A stretch of DNA of 63,444 nucleotides, counting the filler, from Choristocarpus tenellus KU-1152 (lineage: Eukaryota > Protista > Phaeophyceae): the NCBI GenBank assembly GCA_964200185.2. It is 8 parts of 8 records of this genome, joined end to end, with 100 filler letters (N's around TTAATTAATTAA, not from the genome) between each part and the next. Parts side by side here need not be neighbours in the genome. Positions count along the whole stretch, not along the records: positions 19,340 to 33,074 come from CAXNAD020001388.1; 7 more parts are not named here. The stretch is one strand, 5' to 3'. Within the stretch, counting starts at the first letter, position 1. The number at the start of each line of letters is the position of its first letter. The notes below the pieces were generated by a model that saw only the letters and a list, made by a program, of their open reading frames with translations, was not told the origin of the DNA and did no database searches. Both the position numbers and the translations under genes were made by a program. Below, one piece after another: positions 1,165 to 32,998 of this stretch.

Positions 1165-4100
1165 TGTATGTATGTATGTATGTATGTATGTATGTATGTA
1201 TCTGACTGTGCCGACCCAAAAAACCGTCAAACTGTATCTCTCTTTTTTATATTTTTATCCCGCAAAATAAAAAAACGCCTCCTTCCCTAAGTTATTTTTC
1301 TTCCCGAGAGGGGTCATAAAACAAGGCAAAACATTAAAAAACATTAAAAAATAATACTGTTAAAAAAAAGAAACCAAAAAAAAGAAAAAACAATTGTGTC
1401 ACTTTTTTTCACCATCAAAATAAAAATAAAAACGTTAATTCTTTTATTTACCACACACACAATACATGATACATATACATACATAAAACTCCCAAACAAA
1501 CTCTAACAGGGCATTGGCCACAGCAAAAATTAAAAATATGTATTTTTTCAGATGAGAATAATAAAAAATAGTGATTCTACCTCTGTACGGTAGGATCATT
1601 AGTTTTTTAATTGTGAATCATGTCCCGTAGAGCAGAGGACATTTTTTTTTGTTCAAAGAGAAAAAGAATCGTAAAATATAAAAATTGCATTCCATCGAAA
1701 AGAAAGTACTCTTTTCAAAAACAATCACCAAGTCAATGATAACGCTTCATCAATATATTTTTTCTGATTCCTTTCCACAAGAAAAAAAAAACTGAATGCA
1801 TTCTAAGAACTATACACTCTTTTACACTTTTTTTTCTTTTAATGAGGACGGTGCCAAATAAATATAATGCTAATAAAAAAATGTTCTATCACAGTAGCGC
1901 AAACAGTTTTTTTTGTCTAATAAATAAAAAACCCGGTCAGCACAGTCCATAGAGGAAGTACTCTTCGAAATTAAAAGTACTCTTCGAAATTAAAAGTACG
2001 CTACACAGCGATGCAGCCCATAAAATAATACATTAAATTATCTCGTACTTCCCGTAAAACAATACATATTTCTTAAATATTATCCTCAGCACTCTAACCT
2101 TAACCCTAACAATAACCCTAACAAAAACTCTAACAATAATAACCCTAACACTAGCCCTAACCCTAACAACGAAAGAAAAAGAAAAGGGTCAAGAAACGCT
2201 TCTACTTTGGAGCGGTTCTTGATTTTGTAGTGTTGGGTGTTGAGCGATGCTCGGTAAAATATCAGTATAAATATCAGTGTAAATATCAGTATAAATATCA
2301 GTATAAATATCAGAGTGTACCTTGTGCATTGAAGGGATGAAGGTACAAAGAGGAGATGCACATGTGTTCAAGAGTGAGTCACAACCCTAGTCCTACATAC
2401 CCATAGTTTAATTATTCCTACATAAGCATAGTTAAATTATTCTTACACAGTTTAATTATTCCTGCATAAACCATTGTCAAATTATTCCTACATAAGTATA
2501 GTTAAATTATTCTGACATACACATAGTTAAATTATTCATAAATAACCATATTTTAATTATTCCGATATACCCATAGTTAAATCTGATTTACTGTGTTATT
2601 ACTATATATATATTATGATTATTATTATTGACGCAGGGTATTGGTGTACCAGAGGGGTCAAGGTAAGTACAAAAGAGGATCGGTATTACCCAATGTGGAG
2701 AGGTACAGGTCTGTTTTATCTTTTCTCTTTAAATTGCACAATGATACCTTGTAGGTGACCACTAGGATGTCCGGAGACCACTTCGTGAACTCGTTGACCC
2801 AGTTGGATAGTGTAGAAAGAGGCACCACCACCAGGAAGGGGCCGTGGTTTTGCTTAACCTGAAAGAAAATAAATATTTTCTTAACAATAAATCACATTCC
2901 TTTTTTTAATATTGCATCACGTTTTTCTTACAATAAACCACTTCTTTCTTCTTACAATGTATCACATTCTTTTTACAACAAATCGTATTTTTCTTTTTAC
3001 AATGTATCACATTCTTTTAACAATAAATCCCAATTTCTTAAAAAAAACAATTTCTTCACTTTTTTCTCTGTAATACAACAAATAAGAATAAAATAACAAT
3101 TTCTTTTCTTTTTTTTGCTAATAATACAAAAAAATCCAACAAAAGACCACTACTAGTACTATAGAGAAGCAGGGGTATACCAACCGTACATACACAACGC
3201 CTTTTGTCAGAATAATTTTTAAACTTGAAAAAAAATCGTACAGCTCAACCTCGGAAAATGAAATAAAATCAACCAAAAATATTATACTTTATACATTTTA
3301 TTTTAGTTCACGTAGAGAGGGTCATACTGCATTTAAGTAACAAAAAAGTACCACATACTACACCAACATTCTCTCTCTCTACAAAAATACTCCAGGCGTT
3401 TTCCCACAACCTGTAACGTATAGAATAAATAAAAAATGATGCCCTAACCCTAAATATCTAAATACTTCATGTTCCTGACCTTAATTTGACAAAACGAACA
3501 AAAGGGTATACTCCTATCCCTACAAAACATACCCCTACAGCCCTAACCTTAACTCCGAGTCAAAAAAGTATACTTGAAAGTATAATACTAGTCCTAACCC
3601 TAACCCCAACCCTAACCCGCAAAAAGAATCGAAGCATCATTCTATCACCACATAATAATAATAATAATATTAAATAAAGTATAATATCCCTACCCCTACT
3701 CCCAACATTGGTACTTAGCCCTAAGCCTGGACCTTCAAAATAAATATATGATAGTAATAATAAATCCTATTCCTAATCCCTACAAAATATATCCTTAACC
3801 CTATTATCAATCCTTGGCCCTAACCCTGAACCTTCAAAATAAATAATAATAATAATAATAAATCCTATCCCTAATCTCTAAAAAATGTCCCTATAACCCT
3901 ATAATCAAAACTTAACCCTAACCCTGGACCTTCAAAATAAATAATAAAAATATAATCCTGTAACTAATCCCTACAAAATGTATCCCTAACCCTATGATCA
4001 ATACTAATCCTAAATAAATAATAATAATATAATCCTATCACCTACGAAATATCCCCTAACCCTAACCCCAACATCAACACTTCAGTCAGAAAAACTCAAA

Positions 4101-19339: not shown

Positions 19340-21284
19340 TCTGGATTTGACAAAAACAAAATCCCCAAGGGCCCCATAAGACTGGTTCGGGGGGGGGGGG
19401 GCTGGGGGCTATGACTATGTCAACCTTGGACCTGTTGCTGACATGGACTCAACAATATATCTTTCTTGAGCACACTTTGAGGCCATGGGTTACTTCCTAA
19501 TGTTTTGATAACTTGAGCCTGGGGGTATCAGGCTGCTCTGTTAAAAAGTTGGAGGCATTGTGTAGTGGTAGGAATAAAAATAAAAATACACCGAATGTCA
19601 CTGTAGGTGTTGAAACTAGAATACAAAAATATTACATCACCTGTGGAGGTTTTCAATCTTCAAGAGTCTGGATGCTGCTGCAAGATGGTTCTCATAAACT
19701 TATCATCTTCAGAGTGTTTAGGTGTGTGTAAAATTCACACTTAAACCCCAACCAGAACACCCATATTAGCACAGGTTTCAAACTGTTGGTGAGGCAGATG
19801 GGAAGTATCTGCCTTATAAACCCGATTCTAACCCAAGAACCACAAATCAGCAACTCAAGTAGTCTGGAAGCAGCATCAAAACATCTTCAACCACCCATTT
19901 TGTAATTTGTTGAAGTTGCTCCAAGGTAAGTAGAGTCTTTTGAGCACTCTGAAGAGTGTATCGCACTTCACACTACAATTCAGACCAATTCCCAAATGGG
20001 CTGGCTTCATAGTGTAAGAACTTTGTGCATACCATGTGCACAGGTTGGGTAAAAAAACTTGTTTAAATGTCACACCACATTTATCCTTCCCACCTTTCGA
20101 ATGACCACTCCGCGAATACATGCAGGCTTTGCGGCTCCCATGTGAGAAAGCATCTGCCAGGTCAAGGGAAGGTTAACGAAGTGTTCCAAGCACAGTAGAG
20201 GATCAAAAAACAATTATTAACCATGCTGCAAAACTATGCACACATACACTCTGCCATTACAAAGAGAAAAAAGAAGTTCCGTGTAGGTGCCTGCAGTGTC
20301 ACCCCAGACATGGTTATCAACATCCATTCACATTGACTGAACGACATGGGGCCTGGTTGTTTGCCCTTCCAATTTTGTTTCTTGTAGCACCAGTGGTCAC
20401 TGCGGTGAACATTCAATAGTAGTCAACTAATAATAGTCAAGGTACATAGTCACAAATATCTTTAACTTGTGCGAATTACTCTGATCGCATTCAAATATTT
20501 TTGGAATATGATGTCAAACCACAAAAGATGCCAAGGATACACAACACACACAGAAGTTGATCAAGTTGCGAATTTTGAAAGCGATCCTAAGTGGAACGGC
20601 ACTGTAGCATTCTGTTGAGTATTTGCAAAATGATTGACAAGAGATCAGAATATTGCAATGCCTACCCTATAATGCCACGCACACCTTTGAGCTGCAATAC
20701 TATCAAAGCAACAAATTATAGGGTTTGGCAGATGTGAAAGGAGTACAGACTACACCAGTGCTTCAGATGTCAAATTTGGGACAGTGTGTGTGTGTGTGTG
20801 TGTGGACTAAACCAACAGTGCAAGCTAGTTCTATAGGGTAACACATTACATCCCATTGCCAGAAACTTATTGAACCAATTACGGTTTCAGATTATAATCG
20901 GTGCATGAGGTAATGGAGAAGCCATTGGATTGATTGTGTGAGTACGCTATCATTTCTACTTTGTTGACACCCAAACATCGACATCACAAACAATTCACGA
21001 CTACTCGTACTACTTAGGCTCAACATCTTATCTCCCCCCCATCCTTTGAGAATAAGGTAAGTAGCTCGAGCGAGATCGCATTGGCTATATTAAAATTTAT
21101 CTACTTGATATCGAGTCGCGGTGGGCAAAGGCCCTCTCAAGGTGGAGGGAAACCGCAACCTTCTTTGTAATTAATACCCCAAATCGACATATCGACGAAT
21201 TGTTCAACTAATAATACCTGTTAGTTTATGGTGTTAGGGCTTTACATTGATCCTGCAACACAAAAACGAAGTGGGATTGCTTAC

Positions 21285-21944
21285 CATTACTTCGATTGCG
21301 TCCCCTGCCCGGAAATCTGGCAATTCTAACGGCACCGCAGCTTTTGCCTCGTCGAGAAGCTCTTGCAGCAACTTTGATGCTCTATGGGGTTGGAAGAGAA
21401 ACAAAACAAGTACGGATAGGAAAGACAGTCAATTTCATTCATGTGGCAGGGTTGAGACTTCCACAAGTCAAACGTATATGGAAATGGACGATTGTGGAAC
21501 ACATATGATGCCTGCAATGACATCTTAGTTTCATTTTAAGATAGGTTCCACCTGCAGCTGTGTCTCTCACGTACCAGCTCATACTGCGTACCGTTTTTGC
21601 GGAATGCGATGCTTGACTCTTTTTGGGACTTCGGATGATGGGGGCTCCTGCTCCGTAATTGTCACTGCGTTCTCTGAAGATGACATCCACATCCGCCCAT
21701 CACCAAATTTAACTCTCGATCTATAATGTGGTGCTCCCTTCCCGTTCTTATCACTTGCCCCTGTCAGAAGTGCCCCAGACCTCTTCGTACAATCCAGCCC
21801 GATTCCAACCCCTGTGTTAGTCGCTTGCAAACTAAACGGTTGACAGGGGATGCACGGTCGCACTGACTCTTGCTTATTCCATTTTACCACGCTTCCGATC
21901 TGGGACAACACGAGCCGCCTGCCAGCCCTGATAGGGGCAGCCAT
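21285..21944 (-). CDS. MRPL19: Mitochondrial ribosomal protein bL19 (L19), first two exons
   Basis: Exon 21944-21592 (Arg-rich N-terminus lacking acidic residues, MAAPIRAGRRLVLSQ...; ends IPQKR, phase 2) joins exon 21381-21285 (ASKLLQELLDEAKAAVPLELPDFRAGDAIEVM, donor gtaagc). LPDFRAGDAIEV matches the bL19 IPxFRxGDxVxV motif. Later exons were not found in the contig. Confidence 0.8.
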
Positions 21945-22402
21945 CCTTGTTCAACGCCTCACCTCAACAATGTCTTAAAAACCTCAAATCCCAAATTACA
22001 TACATAAATGGTCATACACGCCTTCACAATATACACAAGAACGAAGATATCAAGTTCATGAACAAAAAAAGTGTATTGACTGACTACTGTCACACACTTT
22101 GAAAGAAATTCATCATTCAAGCTGGAGCTGTCGAGTCTTCGGTGGTTGTGATATAGCCCTTGCTTCGCAACCATGCTTGCTTCCTACCTGGCACGCCAGG
22201 TGATCGACTTTTGGAAACTTCAACTTTGCAGAGAGTCAGTATCCTCCCAAGCACACGACCCAACCTAGGAGGATTGCCAAATCCAAACTCGAGGCGAAAT
22301 ACAATAATCTACTCATCAAGCTGCCTCTCTCAACATCCTACCGACAGTACATTTGTTGTTCATGTTTCATTACACACACAGACCCGGCCTTTGCGAGGAG
22401 CC
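21945..22402. promoter_or_regulatory. Probable bidirectional promoter between bL19m and GLDH
   Basis: Divergent ATGs at 21944 (-) and 22403 (+), with 458 nt between them. Confidence 0.55.
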
Positions 22403-25400
22403 ATGTTCCTCACCAGCCGAACTTTTGTGCAAACTCAAGGACCTGCAGTGGAAAATTGCGTGTCTCTCTTACCATACAGACGGAACTCTATCCCTTCACC
22501 AGGGGGCATCGCTGTCTATTTTTCATCCCTGTCTGCTTATCCTAGAACTGAGGGCTCTAAACTTGCGGCTTGCCTTTTGATGGCGGCAGCGTCTCTTGGC
22601 ATTGGCTTTGCGCATCGTGAAAAGATTTGCCAAGTAGCAGACATGCAGGTGCCAGTGAAGCCTGTACATTAACTATTGATATGTTTGCTTTCTTATGTGA
22701 TGCCGAACCTCGGATACCCTCGTCAAAGCTGACCACTCAGTGCGATTCTGTCGAAAAGGTAAGTATTGTCACCTCTCGTCCCCTCCCTTCTCATTGTATC
22801 TGATAGAAATGCCCCTGCCCCTCCAATCCACCCATCCGACCTTTTGATATTGGACATGTTCCCAGGCAGAAGCGGAGGTTGAGGAGGTTGAGGTGGAGAA
22901 CTGGTCCTCAACTCACTCCGTCAAGACTAAGTGCTACATGCAGCCAGAGTCACTACCAGAGGCAAGTCGTCGTATCTCACCCATCATCAAAACCGACCCC
23001 CACACATATGAGATTACCTTGTTTCGCTGTTCTTTGATTCTTTCTGTATACAAACGAATGTACATTGATTGTGCTCATCAACCAATCATTGCAAGAGTGG
23101 ATATTGAAAGTTGGGCTGGCATTGAGGAGTTGTGTAATTTAACAATTACGCCTTCTTGCTGGTATCCCATAGCCCTCATGGTACCGTAAGGTCAAAACTA
23201 CCTATTCCCCCAAGAAAAACGGGATTTAATGTGTGTTGACCGTGAATTCATCAGGTAGAGCACATCATTCGTGAAGCTCACACAAAGGGAAGGCGCGTAC
23301 GAGTTGTGGGGAATGCCCTCTCACCCAGTGGTCTGGGCCTTAGCAAGGATGGCATGCTGTCGTTGGGACTGTGTGACCGCGTTCTTGCTGTGGACAAGCA
23401 GCGACGAACAGTAACAGTAGAGGTGTGGTGTTTTTGTGTTTGTTGTGTGAACCAGCTGTCTTGTCCTTGAAGTACTTGGGGTGGATACTGACTCTGACAT
23501 CAACATTCATTGGGATGGGATGTGAACACCAGTGGGGATTATTTCGACCATTGCATATTTCATTATCTTTTTGATTCATATACTTCACACTGTTGAGGTA
23601 GATATTTATGCTGTGGTGTGCTCATGATATTCAGCAGGTAGGAGTTTTTATGAAGTAGTGTATAATGGGCGATAGTGCCCACATCTTTGTAAAGCAGCAC
23701 ATATGACAGTTCCATCAACTCAAACTCCCAAGTTCAAACAAATACCTAAAAAAGAATAGTATTACGATTATTTTTTAATACTTTGAAACCAAAGACAGAT
23801 CTCCTTGCATCCAACTTTTTGGAACTCCTAGGTTAGACCACTATCTGTACACCTGAAGTCAATATTGTAACAATGGCCAGGCAGTAAGACATATTGTTGA
23901 CAGCTTTGAAACAAAACAACCAGCTCTGAAATCTTTCATAATGTTAACCGCGGCTTATTAAGTTGAAAGCTGAGCCTTCAAGGCTATTGCAGAGTGCCTA
24001 TTGCCATTGTGATCGCTATCCTTAACCCTATTTAACCCTATTTAACCCTATTTTCCCATGTTTTGTTTCTGACCATTCCGTTGCTGTAGGCTGGAGCAAG
24101 AGTGCAGCAGGTGGTGGACGCCCTGGCCCCTCATGGCTTGACACTGCAGAACTACGCCTCCATTAGTGAGCAGCAAATAGGCGGGTTCTTGCAGGCATGT
24201 GGCTACAGTAACCTCTCTCGAGTCACTGGTGTGGATTTGCCTTGGTTGATTTGCACTCATGTGTGTTGTGTGTTGTGTGTTTTGTGGCAGTCGCCAGTGG
24301 TAAGTAAAGGTTTTGTGTGGGATTCTCAGTCCGATCAATCAATAAGTGAAGATGAATTACTATTACCGCCTTGGAGCCAGGCATGCACACCTGACTCACA
24401 GAGAGCATGAACAATTTGAAGTCTCAGTTGTTGATTGGTATGTGAGTTGTTTGGTATGACTTTCCTCTCATCTCCTCTTTGTTCTGTTCATTGCAGCACA
24501 GATTACACAGATCACACTAACCATGCTGTTTGCAGTTGTTTGTTTCAAGGGACAGTAGCATGACTCGTCATCAATGTGATGCATGCAGCCAAGAGCGTGT
24601 GTGAGGTCAACAAAGCAGCCATTTTACTTTTGACAGCTAACGTACACCTGCACTACTATACTTTTTTTGACTTTTAACTTTTAACTTTTTACTTTTTACT
24701 TTCGACACATCCTTTGTTTTGTCCCACCAACAGCATACCCTACTTGTCCTTTCTTTTTTGCCGCCTGTGTCTCCATGCTGGCTGTGGTGGGGTGACATGC
24801 GATGATATGATTCTCTTCATGCCCCATCTAAACAAACTAATCAAGCTAATCAAACTAAACAAACTAAACAAACCCTAACCCTAATCAAAGGTGGGAGCAC
24901 ACGGAACGGGAGCGTTGGTCCCTCCAGTAGATGAACAAATCGTGTCCCTCAAGTTGGTCACACCTGCCATGGGGACCATTGAGCTCAGCAGGAGAGATAA
25001 CCCCGATCTGTTCTACATGGCCAAGGTGTGAGAAACTTCTTGTGGTCTAGCTGACCTTATTTGAAAAATATGTATACGAATTTGAGATTCGAAATCATGA
25101 TGATGCTTGTGTCAAGTATATGGCCATGTCTGTAATTGCTGGTGATGCCTGATACTCCTTACATAGTACTCTACTGCGAGTCTGTGTGATGGGGTATTTG
25201 ATACTTCAGGATGTGATGTCCTCTCTCTGTTCTGGTTGTAGGTTGATTGTGTTGCTCTCTTATCAGAGTATACCTCTATCATATATATGCATTGAATGAT
25301 TGGACTATGGTCCCTACCCCTAAGTCTGCACCAGAAGGGCTAGAGCTCATTAATCTCTCTATTGTAGGGACTGATGCAGGGGAGGTTGCTGGGCAAAGGC

Positions 25401-28400
25401 ATCCTATTGGCCCATACAATATATGCAGTTCAAAGTTGAAGTTTCTACTTGGCATACCTATTGGTTTCCTTTTCCTGTTCCCAACCCCTCAATACATATA
25501 CCTCTGATCTCACTTTTCAATTAATATTTGATGTTACTCCTTTCCATCACTTCAGATTTTTGTTGACCTCACCTCCAATGGTGTTCACCTGCCCACTCTA
25601 ATATATGATATGTGATGTTGACTCCAATTTTTTTCTCCTCTTGTATCCACTGTAAGGTTTAGCTGTATTAACTGTATTAGCTGTATTAGCTGTATTAACT
25701 TTATTAGCTGTATTAACTGTATTAACTTTATTAACTGTATTGTTTTCATACTTACATCTTATGTTTATTCCGTGATTAATTAGGTGGGACTTGGTGCATT
25801 AGGTGTGGTGACAGAGGTGACCATCCAATGTGTACCTAGACACCTCCTTGTGGAGACCACCTCTGTCATGACCAGGGACCAAGTTCGGAACAAGCATCAC
25901 TCCTTGTTGAGGGAGAACCAGCACATCAGGTACTATTTGAGACATCTACCAGTACAAATTATTTTTTCTAATTTAAGGGGCATCAGTCTGTTGCACCAAT
26001 TTAATAGGTTTAATTTAATGTCTGATTTAATGTCAAATTTAATATACCAAATTTAATACGTCGAAGCGGATAGAATATGTGGTAGATACAATGATACAGT
26101 AACTTCCTGACCATGACTGCTGGTATTACCTGTTGAAGCAGAGTCTCCTCTTGATCCCTGCAATATACCTTGAAATTTTGTATTAACAAATGGCACTATA
26201 CACTATTGCATTTTGTGGTCCTTTTTCAACTATGTATATATATATGTATGTATGTATGTATATATCTTTTGGTGTGTGGCAATTGACTATTAATTGACTA
26301 TTAGTACAACCTTTGAATGCCCGGTTGACTTGAGTAGAATAAATACCTCATGCACCTCATGGGGAAAACAGCGTTGTTGGATAAGACAGGAGACAAGACA
26401 TTTTAAAAATCCAATTCCTTCTAGTATGTATCAAGCGATCAATTCGGGTGTCACAATCTGTTTATCGGTTTATCTGTTTATCAGTTTATCAGTTTCACCT
26501 TTTTGCAGGTTAGGCTATGAGTGTACAAGGTGACAAGATTCTATCATCAGATTCTTAGTTATATTTTTGTCTTTGGATGTCTTTCAGAAATCTCATTGGG
26601 TGGTAGACCCGAAAATGTCAGTGAAATCTGACTCGCTCTATCTGTTCTATGCCACCCACTACAAAGTCGTAAGAAACACCTTCCCAATTCACTATTAGAC
26701 ACTGCGATGCAGTAACTGCTGTATAAATTGATCCTCAACAGAGAGAGCATATGTTTATATATATATATTGTGTGTTTGATCCTATTGTATCCAGGTACAT
26801 GTGGATCCCTTATACTGATGCTGTAGTGGTGGTTGGCAGCAATCCTGTAGGAAAGAACAATGGCCTGCAGCGGCGAGGAACTCAGGTGACAAAGTTACTG
26901 TTTTTAGTAATAGTTTTCAGTAGCATACATAATCATCATCAAAATTATCAATGAGTATAGTTATTATTGGGAGCCGTTTCACCATCAATGTATCCCACAT
27001 CGTTAGGAGTAGCTTGATCACCTTTCTTGGCCTTTGCTTTTGATTCTGTTTCATAAGTTTTTGAAGACTCAGCCAATACCTTTATTTGGTTCTCTATATC
27101 CTTCTTAATAATATCTAATTCTGGTTTCACAATAGAGATCTTTTTGAAATCTGGTAGAGAAATGTCAGGTTTAAGTTCAAACTCTAGGTTAAATTTTAAA
27201 TCTTTTCCTTCTTCATTGATAATACTGATGATACTAGGATCTGTTGCTATTTTTGTTATCATTATCAATTTCTTTGTTATCATTGCTCAAGTTAGTGCAC
27301 TATGATTAGCAGTTTGAAATGGTGTGAAATGTACTATTATTCAGTATCTTGTGTCTGTAAGGTGTCCTGTCTTGTCAATACCAACATTTATGTGTGTGTG
27401 TGTTTGTTTTTCATAAACTTGTTTTGTACTGTGAAAGTTTTCCAAAAGTGTGAGTGAGTTGTAGGATGCACCCAGATTGTTCTAGTATGTACTATCTACT
27501 ATGTACTATGTACTGATTGGCAAGTGGAATGTTTTGATTTCATTGTTATTATTGTTATTATTATTATTGTTATTATTACTGTGGGATATGTGTAATGTGA
27601 GGAAACAGTTATATGTTAGAATATGGCATGTTGATAAGAGAGACCTTTCAGAAAAGTCTTTTGAACCCTATCCCTAAGTTGATTATATTATTGTCCTGCC
27701 TTCCTATCTTTTTTTATCTCACTTATCTCACTTGCATTGGGTATGATCACTTCTGGAAATTTAGATTATTATTATTATTATTGTTGTTGTTTATAGTTAC
27801 GTGACTCCTTTCTTGTTGTCAAATTGTGTTCATCTTCAAAATTGCTTTGGTAGCATTGATTGGCATAAAAGGGGACACCGGGTACACCACCTTGGTCGGC
27901 GTATTCATGTGGATGTGAAACATTGATGTAAATGGACAGATAGTTAGTTGTCTGTTCATTGGCGCGAGCGCTAATTTGATGTATATAATTTATGTAGTAT
28001 GGCATCAATGTTGGTACAAAAAAGTATTGTAAATCTTGTTTCACTCTCTTTCCTACCTCACATACATGGAGTTTATGCTCGCATACGTATACATGAATAA
28101 ATATATAAATATGTATCTATGCATCTATGTTCTTGTGTGGGTTGTATCTCGGGTGCCTCAATTTTTTTTTCCCGAAAGGCTCCGAAACACATGGTGGTCT
28201 GCCAAGAACACTCTGAGAAGGAGGAAAGCAGTCAAGGCTCAACAGGTGAGGGCATGCACAATGCATTACTACTGGAGAACTGAATTATTATTATTATTGT
28301 TATTATTAATATTATTTATCCCATATATTTTATTTGTTGATGGTGTAGTGGATCGATGGCAGTAAAACAGCGTCAACGCCTTCCATTGTGTTAGAATGTT

Positions 28401-29010
28401 AGAAGAAGTTCAAAATATTGTTTTTTTTATTAGTAACACAGTGTTCGTCTTGTGTGTGTGAAGTAATGAGTGTGTGTGGTTTAACTTGCATCACCAATTT
28501 GGGAAGAATTTGATTATCTTACATCACAAAACGATAGCTCTATGGTATACCATAATGTATTTTTTGTAACTCAAGAAGTGGTTCCATCCCATGTCACTGT
28601 ACAATTGTTTTATGGCTCTTGCAGTCATGCAATGTTGTTGTTACTGTTTCTTTCTATCATAGTATTGTATTGTATTGTATTGAAAATAATGGTACTACTT
28701 TGTCCTCTGATTTGTATACATACCCATGGTGATGTCACTTAGGAGCAAAAACAGCGTGTTGATGTATGTTGACAGGACATGACATGTGTAGAAGTTGTCA
28801 TCAGTAGTGATGTTGTGCACACCTTTTGACACACATTACTACTGTCATGGTTTGATGGTTTGATGGTTTGATGGTGTGATGACTGCAGTAAGGTGGCTAC
28901 ATGCTTTGCACAGTGTATATGCTGATACATACTGTACAGTTACAAAGTTGTGGTGTTGTTATTGGTTGGAAAGGCATCATTCGATTATGCCAATTTGCAT
29001 ACTTTGCTTT

Positions 29011-29044
<34 letters not shown>

Positions 29045-32000
29045 GTGGGAAACTGTAGCGCCAACACATGATAACCAAGTGACTTAATTTGATTACATTT
29101 TGATTACATTTTGCACTCTGAACAACATGCTTCATTTGGGTGTCAAGGAGACGACCCTCTATGTATAATCCTTGCCTTCCCATTACCTGGACTAGTGCTA
29201 CAATTGTAGTACCTGTTAAAGCATCTCGAAGTTATTTTTTGGGTATTCTAAATTACTCTACATTATCTTGCCACATATTATCTTGCCGTAGATTTGTCAA
29301 CTCTTTATTGATGATTTGATAGTTCACTCATAATGTGGCCTCACATGCACTATTTTATTTATTATATTTTTGTTTATTTTTAGCTTTGGACTGCCTTCAG
29401 CCAATGAAGGACTTGCTACTGCAGAAGTTGAGTAAGGACAAGTCACCTTGTACACAGGAGGAGGTGGAATCAATGAACTTTGCTGCTCTCAGGGACAAGA
29501 TGCTTGCACTGGGTCCTCTGGACACAGCATGGGTGAAGCAGGTAAGACTGTTTTGATGTGATCTTGGTCATGATTGGTATGTCTTTCTTAAATACATTAT
29601 GTCAGTGTACTGTGCTTGTAGGTACTTAGTAGTCAGTACATGTGTAGTCAGTACAAGAGTAGTCAGTAGTACAATGTACATGGTTTGATGTAAGAAAAAA
29701 GAGTAAGATAATGTCTAACAGTTGAAACGGTCTGTTTATAGGATATCATCGCACACAGTGGCTTTGAGAATAATGTTGGCATGATGAGTGCGTAATGATG
29801 TATAATACACTCAATGCATAATACAGACAAGTAATGATGTATAATACACACGTGAAGTATTCTGTAATTTGGCAGGGTAGGTAGTCCTTTTTTTTATTTG
29901 AGGTTGATAGGGGGACAAGTCATAGGTGCAGCGGGATTTTCGTGATTCACCAGGTCAGTACACATTGACACTATGGATGGTGACACATGTAGTTTGATGT
30001 CATCTCGGAGGTACACCAGAGTACCCTTGTGAGTCCATAATGATCAGTACTGCCTGTGACTGAACCAACTTACATGATATATTTATGTTCCTACTACTGA
30101 ATCATGTTTCATTATGTTGTACTGCATTGTTTTACATTTTATTTCATTTTATTTTATTTCATTTTATTTATTATATAATACTCTACTATGCAGGTGAATG
30201 CCTCTGAGGCAGAGTTCTGGCGCCAAAGTCAAGGTAAACGGGTAGACTATAGCGATCGAGTACTTGGCTTTGAGTGTGGAGGACAACAGTGGGTCAATGA
30301 AGTGTCTCTTCCAACTGGCTCCATTGACCAGCCTAATGGTAACGACCTCAAGTTTATGGTGAGTGTTCCTTCCATTCAAGACAGATGACCTACCCCAGTG
30401 TGTGTTCTGGGCGTGTGTCCTTGTGAGTTTGTGTGTCCAGTCTCACCATCGACGCTTTTTTATTTGTTGAGATAGGACCTGACCCCCATGCTGTAGAAGA
30501 GGGGAAATGAGCTGTCTAGCTCCCTCTGAGTACTTGGAGGGTGTTTTTGTTTTGAAAAGTAAAAAAAAATGGCACTGTGAAATTTTTGGCTTAAAAAAAT
30601 ATTTTGTTTGTTCCTATTTTTTTAATCTATGTTGGTACGGGGTACTTGTGAATCGCTGTATTTCCCAGAGGTTGGTGATTTTCTCATGCAATACACCCCC
30701 ACAGGGTATATGTATATACACACGCTAGTGCTTTTAGTCCCTCTCAGGTCTGGAGAGTTTTGATGAAGGCTTGTGTGCTAGGGTTAGGGTTATTGCATGA
30801 GTATTCTATAGTACCATGTTTGTACTGTCTATCGTTCCTAGCACTGCAATGCTTCAATGTGCAGTGGGATGTCAACAACTCTAGCCTCTGGTAATGAATC
30901 AGGAGGAGGTACTGAGGCTAATAGAAGACAATAACCTGCCTGCCCCAGCCCCAATTGAGCAACGCTGGACTGCCTCAAGCAGGGCTAAGATGAGCCCAGC
31001 ACATGATGAAGGTTCTGCTGACACTGTGAGACAGACTGTTGTATTACTTTAGTCTAGTCTCGTCTAGTCTAGTCTAGTCTTGGAGTTTTTACCATTGCTT
31101 CCTGTGATGGTGTGGTCTCTTGCCAAGGTGGAAATGTAGATAGCTCAATTTGGAGCTGGTGTCAAGATGTGTGTTAAAACGTTTCTGTAATGTGTGGTGG
31201 CTTAGTAATGACTGATTTCCATTGAACCTCTATTCCACATGTAGCTCCTAAACTATCTAATTAACTATGATTTGAAGTAGAAGGTTCTCCTAAACCCTTG
31301 GGTGGTCTGATAGTGAGAATATTAGGTTTTTTGCCCACGGTGATAAAGAGGTTTATATCTTTGGGCTTGTTTTATTAACTTTGGCGTAACTTTATCAGAT
31401 CATAAGCACTATTTCTTGTTTGAGTATGTGCACATGATGTTGACATGGTGTTTTGGCTTGATGATGACATGGTGTTGAAATGATGGTCTGTGAAGTACCA
31501 CAGACCTGGACATAGAGTACTTCTATTTTTTTAGGCAATATTGCAGTATTTTATGTGTAGTTAAGGTATCAGCCAATACCACATACTAGTATAAAATAAT
31601 TATTGCTAAATATTGAGGAGGTGAAAATGTGATGAACAGCAATACTTTGTCACCATCAGTAGAACATGCTACTGATATAGTAGGTTTGGTAGTAGTGGTA
31701 CTTATTTGATTGGGGTTGTGTGTCCTACGTACCCATGTACCTGCAACAGGGTGATCATTGTACCAATGTTGTGTACTTTGAACTATCCATCGTTGCTATA
31801 CCCACTGACCCCTCAACATACTATATTTTAGTCAAAAGTGATACTCATCCTGTTCAAACATACTACACTCCATGGGCACTCAGAACATATAGCCTCAACG
31901 GCTGTACCAACACCAACATCAACACCACTCTTACATTATTTTTGTTATATTATTTGTTGTTGAAGGTGTTTTCGTGGGTGGGAATCATCATGTACCTCCC

Positions 32001-32084
32001 CAGTGAAGACCCTAAGGTGCGTGGGGAGTTAACGGAGGCGTTCTTCAAGTACAGAGATGCCTGCAAGACTCAACTGTGGGACAG
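22403..32084 (+). CDS. GLDH: L-galactono-1,4-lactone dehydrogenase, mitochondrial (ascorbate synthesis); 12 exons, C-terminus missing
   Basis: Exons 22403-22648, 22866-22961, 23255-23422, 24090-24194, 24891-25025, 25784-25929, 26795-26885, 28179-28245, 29384-29541, 30194-30358, 30903-31025 and 31966-32084 join in frame. Motifs: NWSSTH, GNALSPSG, LQNYASISEQQIGGFLQVGAHGTG, GLGALGVV, RYMWIPYTD, GFECGGQQWV, PAPAPIEQRW, FSWVGIIMYLP. The start ATG and exon 28179-28245 rest mainly on phase logic. Confidence 0.95.
25661..25742. repeat. 9-bp tandem repeat (CTGTATTAR)
   Basis: About 9 units upstream of the acceptor at 25783. Confidence 0.85.
26978..27250 (-). pseudogene. tig: Bacterial trigger factor fragment (Rickettsiales-like) inside GLDH intron 7
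   Basis: IATDPSIISIINEEGKDLKFNLEFELKPDISLPDFKKISIVKPELDIIKKDIENQIKVLAESSKTYETESKAKAKKGDQATPNDVGYIDGE follows the trigger-factor pattern at the N-domain/linker/FKBP-domain junction (DLxFxxxxExxPxIxLxD...AKxGDxVxxDxxGYxDG). It is AT-rich, has no introns and is truncated at both ends. Confidence 0.8.
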
Positions 32085-32998
32085 GTGTGTTTCACTTTGT
32101 ACCCTATTAGCATCAATACTGTTTTGATACTATTAATACTATTAATTCTAGGGTTAGGGATGTACAGTGACAACACACAGCAATACTGTCCTTGTGAAGG
32201 AAGGTATGCCTAGGATCAATTCCACCTACACATGTACAGCTATTAATATATTAAAGTATGTTAAATGGTGATAGGTCAGTGGGGGAAGTGGGGAGTATTA
32301 CCTGCAAGTCCACAATTTTCTAGGAATATACTCTGAAACACAGCCAACCATTGTATGTTGATACAAGCTAACAACACACTTCTAGAATGAGAAGGTACTG
32401 TACACCATGGGAGGCATCTGCTGTACACGTGCAGTCATTGGTCAGCACTTTTTTTGAGGATATAGGCGCTCTAGGTAGTAGTGAAAGATGGTATGATGCA
32501 AAGGCATAGCAACCCCCTTACACGAAAGGCCTTGATGCACTGTGGAATGAACTCATGTATCCGACATGTGCTCATGTGTATTTCCATTGACTTTCAGTAG
32601 TGTAAGATAGTGCCAGGTGTTTTAGTTTTGTTTTTTTGGAGGGGGGGGGGCACAGGAGAATTGGACATGACAGTTTGAAACTATTAACAACCCTTTGATC
32701 TTGATTACAGTTACATAGATTTGAAACTGTAAGAGGTGTTCGACTATCATGGGTCAGGTAACTAACATGTATTTGATGGAGTTACCAGAACAGTGTAACT
32801 ACTTGTCAAGGAAAATAATATGATGGATGGTACAAAGTAGTGAGTATATACTGCCATTGGTATGGTATATATATATATATATTTACATATATGTATGCTT
32901 GAGGTAGTATAACATGTAGTGTCATACTGATTCACTGATGCCCATGTATCTATGTATCTGGTGGGAATCTCCGATTCTTGATCCTAATTGGTTGATGA

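Follow-up and report, generated by a model that had tools for sequence, protein, structure and literature searches.

A probable relic of a 'Candidatus Megaira'-type trigger factor gene in a GLDH intron of an alga near the brown algae

The window (the whole stretch of DNA that was analysed, 63,444 nucleotides, filler included) contains an L-galactono-1,4-lactone dehydrogenase (GLDH) gene, one intron of which carries a short piece of bacterial DNA in antisense orientation. In all likelihood, this piece is a dead internal fragment of the trigger factor gene (tig) of a 'Candidatus Megaira'-type member of the Rickettsiaceae, which became integrated in the GLDH gene of a stramenopile alga near the brown algae. 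The fragment is functionless and is transcribed only within the GLDH pre-mRNA, from which it is removed by splicing. An earlier note on this DNA had proposed an endosymbiont-to-nucleus insertion that stands as a fossil of an infection, and this proposal is borne out by the donor clade, by the contigs that bridge the insert and by the spliced intron around it. Relics of endosymbiont DNA in the nucleus are already known from other hosts; this algal case adds one.

The features to which the text refers are as follows.

22899..32085, plus strand: host L-galactono-1,4-lactone dehydrogenase gene, with at least 10 exons recognised by protein similarity and a 67-nt exon recognised by RNA joints
26795..26885, plus strand: GLDH exon upstream of the intron, 74% identical to Discosporangium GLDH residues 256-286
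26886..28178, plus strand: GLDH intron holding the insert, 1293 nt, GT..AG, from a spliced contig of run X3
26935..26954: 20-nt flank stretch, an 18/20 inverted copy of 27213-27232 (inside the insert), 20 nt past the downstream end of the insert
26948..27283, minus strand: open frame of 111 codons including the stop (from stop to stop, 26951-27286, 112 codons)
26975..27253, minus strand: core of the bacterial insert, 92-93 codons homologous to Tig residues about 86-177 (tblastn, Pfam, TIGRFAM)
27252-27263 and 27273-27284: exact 12-nt direct repeats, 21 nt apart, straddling the other junction (start of homology)
28179..28245, plus strand: GLDH exon downstream of the intron, 67 nt, with joints 26883>28177 and 28243>29382

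Host GLDH gene and the bacterial fragment in its intron

The host GLDH was compared with named GLDHs exon by exon, the exons never being joined. Over ten exons, the identity was 72.7% to the early-diverging brown alga Discosporangium mesarthrocarpum, which was the top match for 6 of the 10, followed by 67% to Ectocarpus, 65% to Undaria, about 55% to haptophytes and about 50% to land plants; a search of representative proteins with one exon gave fragments at a best identity of 74% or less, and a protein atlas search with one exon gave no information on the host lineage. One exon matched GLDH structures in the PDB (E 1.7e-14), and other exons matched the Pfam families FAD_binding_4 and ALO. The GLDH genes of the host and of Discosporangium are divided into exons at the same points of the protein. 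This closeness to Discosporangium, together with the common intron positions, points to a stramenopile rather than a green alga; judged by these comparisons, the host either branches early within the brown algae or is a near relative of them. A GLDH is to be expected of a photosynthetic stramenopile (Wheeler et al. 2015, PMC4396506). The GC content of the GLDH locus is about 40% in the host versus 46.5% in Discosporangium.

Run X3 is spliced at GT..AG sites, with joints at 25023>25782, 25926>26792, 26883>28177 and 28243>29382, and is therefore apparently transcript-derived. The X3 contig that joins 26883 to 28177 (cut +2), at a depth of 216, removes the intron holding the insert. The tig fragment is antisense to GLDH, and 89 nt separate its core from the 5' splice site of the intron. 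The earlier note had placed the fragment antisense in a GLDH intron with exons on both sides, and the splice joints and the exon homology agree with this placement. Its numbering of that intron as the seventh did not hold as well: counted on the gene model of Discosporangium, it would be roughly the eighth, although a diverged first exon may be absent from the window. Upstream of the gene, positions 19340-22800 have a GC content of up to 45-50% and open frames of up to 171 codons, and no Pfam match was found there. A candidate ribosomal-protein-L19-like motif on the minus strand near 21240-21430 was not confirmed and was dropped.

The open frame at 26948-27283 matched Pfam Trigger_N with an E value of 3.6e-9 (37.5 bits; gathering cut-off 22.2) and the NCBIfam equivalog TIGR00115 (tig) with an E value of 1.8e-18 over model positions 75-169 of 410. 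The TIGR00115 score of 66.6 bits is below the whole-protein cut-off of 180.2, as the fragment covers only a quarter of the model. Trigger factor structures of Vibrio and Escherichia coli in the PDB also matched the fragment (E 1e-6 to 3e-5), at about 30% identity. In a tblastn comparison of 18 full-length Tigs with this part of the window, residues about 86-190 paired with 27277-26954, and the ungapped, frameshift-free core of homology ran from 27253/27250 down to 26975; the first about 10 and the last about 8 codons of the open frame are not clearly Tig-like. Thus, the stretch of about 91 stop-free, AT-rich codons that had been noticed on the minus strand at 26978-27250 is confirmed with slightly wider limits. 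The insert has a GC content of 33% and the surrounding intron 26-34%, that is, composition does not set the insert apart.

No other piece of tig was found in any frame with the 18 full-length Tigs, and a search with 405 ORFs around 35 bacterial tig loci gave 0 matches to tig neighbour genes outside the insert. Rfam models gave no match in the analysed part, and an exact look-up of the open frame among called genes gave none. As far as can be read from these comparisons, the foreign DNA is a single internal piece of tig that measures about 280-300 bp and makes up roughly 21% of the gene. Aligned with a 441-aa Megaira-type trigger factor, the fragment reaches from the last part of the N-terminal domain through the linker into the FKBP/PPIase domain, of which it includes the first strand; it has neither the ribosome-binding N-terminus, nor most of the PPIase domain, nor the C-terminal chaperone domain of the full three-domain architecture. 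Compared with bacterial Tig (TIGR00115; PF05697/PF00254/PF05698), with which its homology is clear over model positions 75-169, the algal fragment covers only about 21% of the protein. By its predicted domain content, it is a piece of a gene and not a Tig protein, and it cannot act as Tig.

Linkage of the insert to host sequence and its junctions

The insert is physically linked to host nuclear sequence at a host-like single-copy depth, in short-read contigs that come from one study and probably one culture, one run possibly being the source of the window. In run X1, one contig covers 26274-27536 with 0 differences and holds both the exon 26795-26885 and the entire insert, at a depth (per-contig word depth, a coarse measure) of 24.1 versus 17.9-22.6 in neighbouring host contigs. 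In run X2, contigs 26543-27012 and 26988-27320 cross both junctions at depths of 6.1-6.3 versus 5.5-6.9 in their neighbours. In run X3, the unspliced contigs 26857-27237 and 27217-27472 cross both junctions at depths of 8.1 and 2.7, versus 171-216 for the spliced exons. The earlier note had named junction-spanning reads and coverage relative to the host as checks on its reading; contigs from all three samples bridge both junctions, and the depth of the insert is host-like in X1 and X2.

Two further observations concern these assemblies. Run X4, from a different organism in the same study, contains two 151-nt contigs (27013-27163 and 27185-27335, depth 2) whose sequence agrees letter for letter with the window over the insert and one junction. 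Because the GLDH exon of the X4 organism itself differs at 6 of 42 letters, these contigs are probably carry-over between samples rather than a shared insertion. In addition, one X2 contig matches only 27190-27222 (33 letters), its remaining 255 letters on one side and 22 on the other being unlike the window. This contig may represent a second tig-like sequence, either in a live symbiont or in another relic, or a chance match.

Both junctions carry short repeats. On one side, the 20-nt stretch at 26935-26954 is an inverted copy of a segment inside the insert, and none of 300 shuffles of the flank reached the same 18/20 match; it is possibly templated filler DNA from the insertion. On the other side are the two exact 12-nt direct repeats. 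Together, the junction repeats may reflect templated filler and slippage, as at end-joined insertions, or slippage at a later time. We propose no more than a likely course of events: a Megaira-type bacterium would have lysed inside an algal cell and released its DNA; a chromosome break in the GLDH intron would have taken up this DNA while being repaired by end joining, in the manner of NUMTs, NUPTs and Wolbachia nuclear inserts; templated filler synthesis during this repair would have left the 20-nt inverted copy at one junction and the 12-nt direct repeat at the other; and the fragment would then have drifted neutrally by roughly 10% per site since insertion. Apart from the junctions, short dispersed repeats occur near 26637-26684 and about 27376-27411. 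Several X1 contigs of 3.8-10.6 kb match 26637-26684 with 5-6 differences, and the region around 27376-27411 is where contigs of X1, X2 and X4 start or stop.

An indirect route, in which a virus, a transposon or another eukaryote first captured the Megaira DNA so that the donor was not the endosymbiont of this alga, seems improbable to us. Brown-algal genomes carry integrated viruses, and the dispersed repeats in the same and the preceding intron would suit such a carrier. However, neither terminal repeats nor a gene of a virus or transposon was found around the insert, and its depth is that of a single copy; moreover, Megaira infects the brown alga Nemacystus decipiens directly (Davison et al. 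2023, PMC10132079).

It is very unlikely that the insert is an assembly chimera or contamination, in which a symbiont read was wrongly joined to a host contig. Megaira-type bacteria are common in algal cultures, symbiont contigs do occur in eukaryote assemblies (one of the closest relatives described below, P0072, lies in an assembly of >270,000 contigs), and every supporting run comes from one study. Nevertheless, host intron and exon sequence flanks the insert on both sides, whereas a chimera would yield a join and not a 280-bp island. The independent de Bruijn contigs of the three samples bridge the junctions without a difference and at host-like depth, and the apparently transcript-derived assembly has the same junctions in its unspliced transcripts.

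Decay and age of the fragment

The nearest relative of the fragment shares 77.5% of its DNA sequence. In three-taxon comparisons (92 sites for each codon position), the fragment branch had 10.5, 12 and 17 changes at codon positions 1, 2 and 3, whereas the branches of live sister genes had 8-13.5, 2-4 and 11-33, which gives the fragment an excess at the second position of about 8-10 per 92 sites. This excess, with the near-equal distribution of changes over the codon positions, indicates that constraint was relaxed and that the fragment has diverged neutrally by roughly 10% since it was inserted. Of 11 near-invariant columns (at least 95% conserved among 120 Megaira-type Tigs), the fragment departs from 3, whereas 104 of the 120 real Tigs depart from none of them. 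Both results accord with the view, expressed in the earlier note, that the sequence is beginning to decay.

A gain of host function by the open frame or by an antisense RNA is a reading to which we give very little credence. It draws on the 111 stop-free codons in DNA of 33% GC and on the absence of an indel over 93 homologous codons. In simulations, the frame remained stop-free after 30-36 random substitutions in 13-23% of cases (P 0.13-0.23, for the absence of stops alone), and the open frame therefore needs no selective explanation; that 93 codons have stayed free of both stops and indels after about 10% decay is somewhat lucky. The other evidence runs against exaptation as well: (i) substitutions are nearly equal across the codon positions; (ii) near-invariant Tig residues have been lost; (iii) the frame is antisense to the sole transcript seen and is spliced out of it; and (iv) the fragment spans parts of two domains, neither of which is complete.

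The orthologous GLDH intron of Discosporangium (L043:9928-10421, 494 nt) contained no Tig-like sequence, so that the insertion either is younger than the deep Discosporangium split or was lost in Discosporangium. With the nearest relative at 71% amino-acid and 77.5% nucleotide identity, the comparison does not fully separate divergence of the donor from decay after insertion. The insertion had been described as fairly recent; this description is only partly supported, given a nearest known donor relative at only 77.5% DNA identity, the roughly 10% of neutral divergence on the branch of the fragment itself and the departures from near-invariant columns.

Donor lineage and comparison with known systems

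When one genome from each GTDB species was scanned by pattern, a procedure biased to exact shared words, 18 loci were returned, 16 of which belong to MAGs of the Rickettsiales/Rickettsiaceae (48-65% identity), the remaining 2 being from a member of the Christensenellaceae (37%) and a sphingomonad (29%). Two of the matched genomes, NVVL01 and JAFLDA01, have been assigned to 'Ca. Megaira' (Davison et al. 2023, PMC10132079). The 120 Tigs around the best match were then compared with the fragment, and the closest proteins among them were P0008 (71.4% identity), P0072 (70.7%) and P0003 (68.5%). The contig of P0008 (2.6 kb, bacterial; Logan assembly of run DRR496536) begins just upstream of tig; P0072 comes from a 6-kb bacterial contig (JAANSX010272018.1) in GCA_024449895.1; and P0003 comes from Tara metagenomes. 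The P0072 and P0003 contigs are small bacterial contigs with the usual M20-peptidase-tig order. The P0072 contig presumably belongs to a Megaira-type symbiont that went unnoticed in the sequencing of a eukaryote genome.

In a maximum-likelihood tree of 65 rows, built from 92 residues of one gene and with no Rickettsia or Orientia rows, the fragment and the two uncultured Tigs P0008 and P0072 form a clade with 100% SH-aLRT support. This clade is nested among sequences that carry the labels Megaira venefica, Megaira polyxenophila and Megaira endosymbiont of Nemacystus decipiens, and Tisiphia falls outside. The genus-level label of the donor, Megaira-type Rickettsiaceae, is thus likely, as read from 92 residues of one gene for a group that is defined by 16S and genome trees. 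The Rickettsiales origin put forward in the earlier note is upheld by the GTDB loci, by the best protein at 71% and by the fully supported clade within Megaira-labelled Rickettsiaceae, and its remark that the peptide is nearer to Rickettsiaceae Tig than to that of E. coli holds at 71% versus about 30%. The closest named relatives of the fragment belong to 'Candidatus Megaira', a group with genomes from algal hosts such as Nemacystus decipiens and Mesostigma viride (PMC10132079); these are live symbionts, and the fragment is 49-65% identical to the named genomes and 71% identical to two others. A metagenome scan found no relative closer than 59%. Three metagenome loci share an exact 9-residue word with the fragment, and were rejected as chance matches that the pattern search had singled out: their 25/26-nt match to 26982-27007 (in one locus, at 3091-3116 of a 188-kb contig) runs opposite to the coding strand of a tyrosine-recombinase gene. 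A plastid trigger factor is encoded by photosynthetic eukaryotes, but a pseudogene copy of the host's own plastid-targeted protein is scarcely credible, as the fragment is 71% identical to its nearest Rickettsiaceae Tigs and nests among Tigs of this family with 100% support, when other bacteria reach only 29-37% and E. coli and Vibrio about 30%.

Read as a Megaira-type relic, the fragment is direct genomic evidence that such Rickettsiaceae were once inside cells of this algal lineage, and that the symbiont was once close enough to the nuclei of generation-founding cells for its DNA to be fixed. Live Megaira symbionts are known from many algae, one brown alga among them. Relics of this sort can be used as dated markers of earlier infections, and annotators should take care neither to discard them nor to mislabel them as contamination; one decayed 280-bp piece alone has no functional consequence. 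More tentatively, and on balance doubtfully, the fragment might be one visible piece of an old, heritable association of a marine Megaira lineage with one early-diverging lineage of brown algae (or of a sister class), and its junctions might record a polymerase-theta/MMBIR-type capture in a stramenopile nucleus. If this were true and more relics were present in this genome and its relatives, Megaira infection would become datable across the origin of brown algae. We found no report in the literature of a comparable relic in brown algae or their relatives; the word 'Rickettsiales' is absent from a large brown-algal genome paper, and 'nuclear' is absent from the main text of Davison et al. 2023 (PMC10132079).

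Among known systems, three are close to the present insert. The first is that of organellar inserts in the nucleus (NUMTs and NUPTs), which the algal insert resembles in being a short, internal, neutral gene fragment in an intron, with junction repeats and an inverted copy that are filler-like. Filler DNA occurs at the end-joined junctions of such insertions. NUMTs and NUPTs have an organellar donor, whereas the donor here would be bacterial, with a repair mechanism that is suggested by the junction repeats alone. The second is the transfer of Wolbachia DNA to host nuclear genomes in arthropods and nematodes, reportedly described by Dunning Hotopp and colleagues in 2007. There, too, DNA of a Rickettsiales endosymbiont lies in host chromosomes and is mostly non-functional and decaying; the hosts, however, are animals with germline-resident symbionts, and the inserts reach whole genomes, as opposed to the tiny insert in this alga. 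The third, and the only nuclear relic of such symbionts in algae that we found in the literature, is the rickettsial insert of about 9 kb with four gene-like regions in the nuclear genome of Volvox carteri EVE (Kawafune et al. 2015, PMC4324946). In both algae, DNA of a Rickettsiaceae endosymbiont has been fixed in the nucleus, and the Volvox insert, too, is read as the trace of a past infection (PMC4324946). The Volvox insert, however, is about 9 kb long and lies in a green alga, whereas the present one is a single-gene piece of about 280 bp, intronic, in a stramenopile, and from a marine Megaira-type clade.
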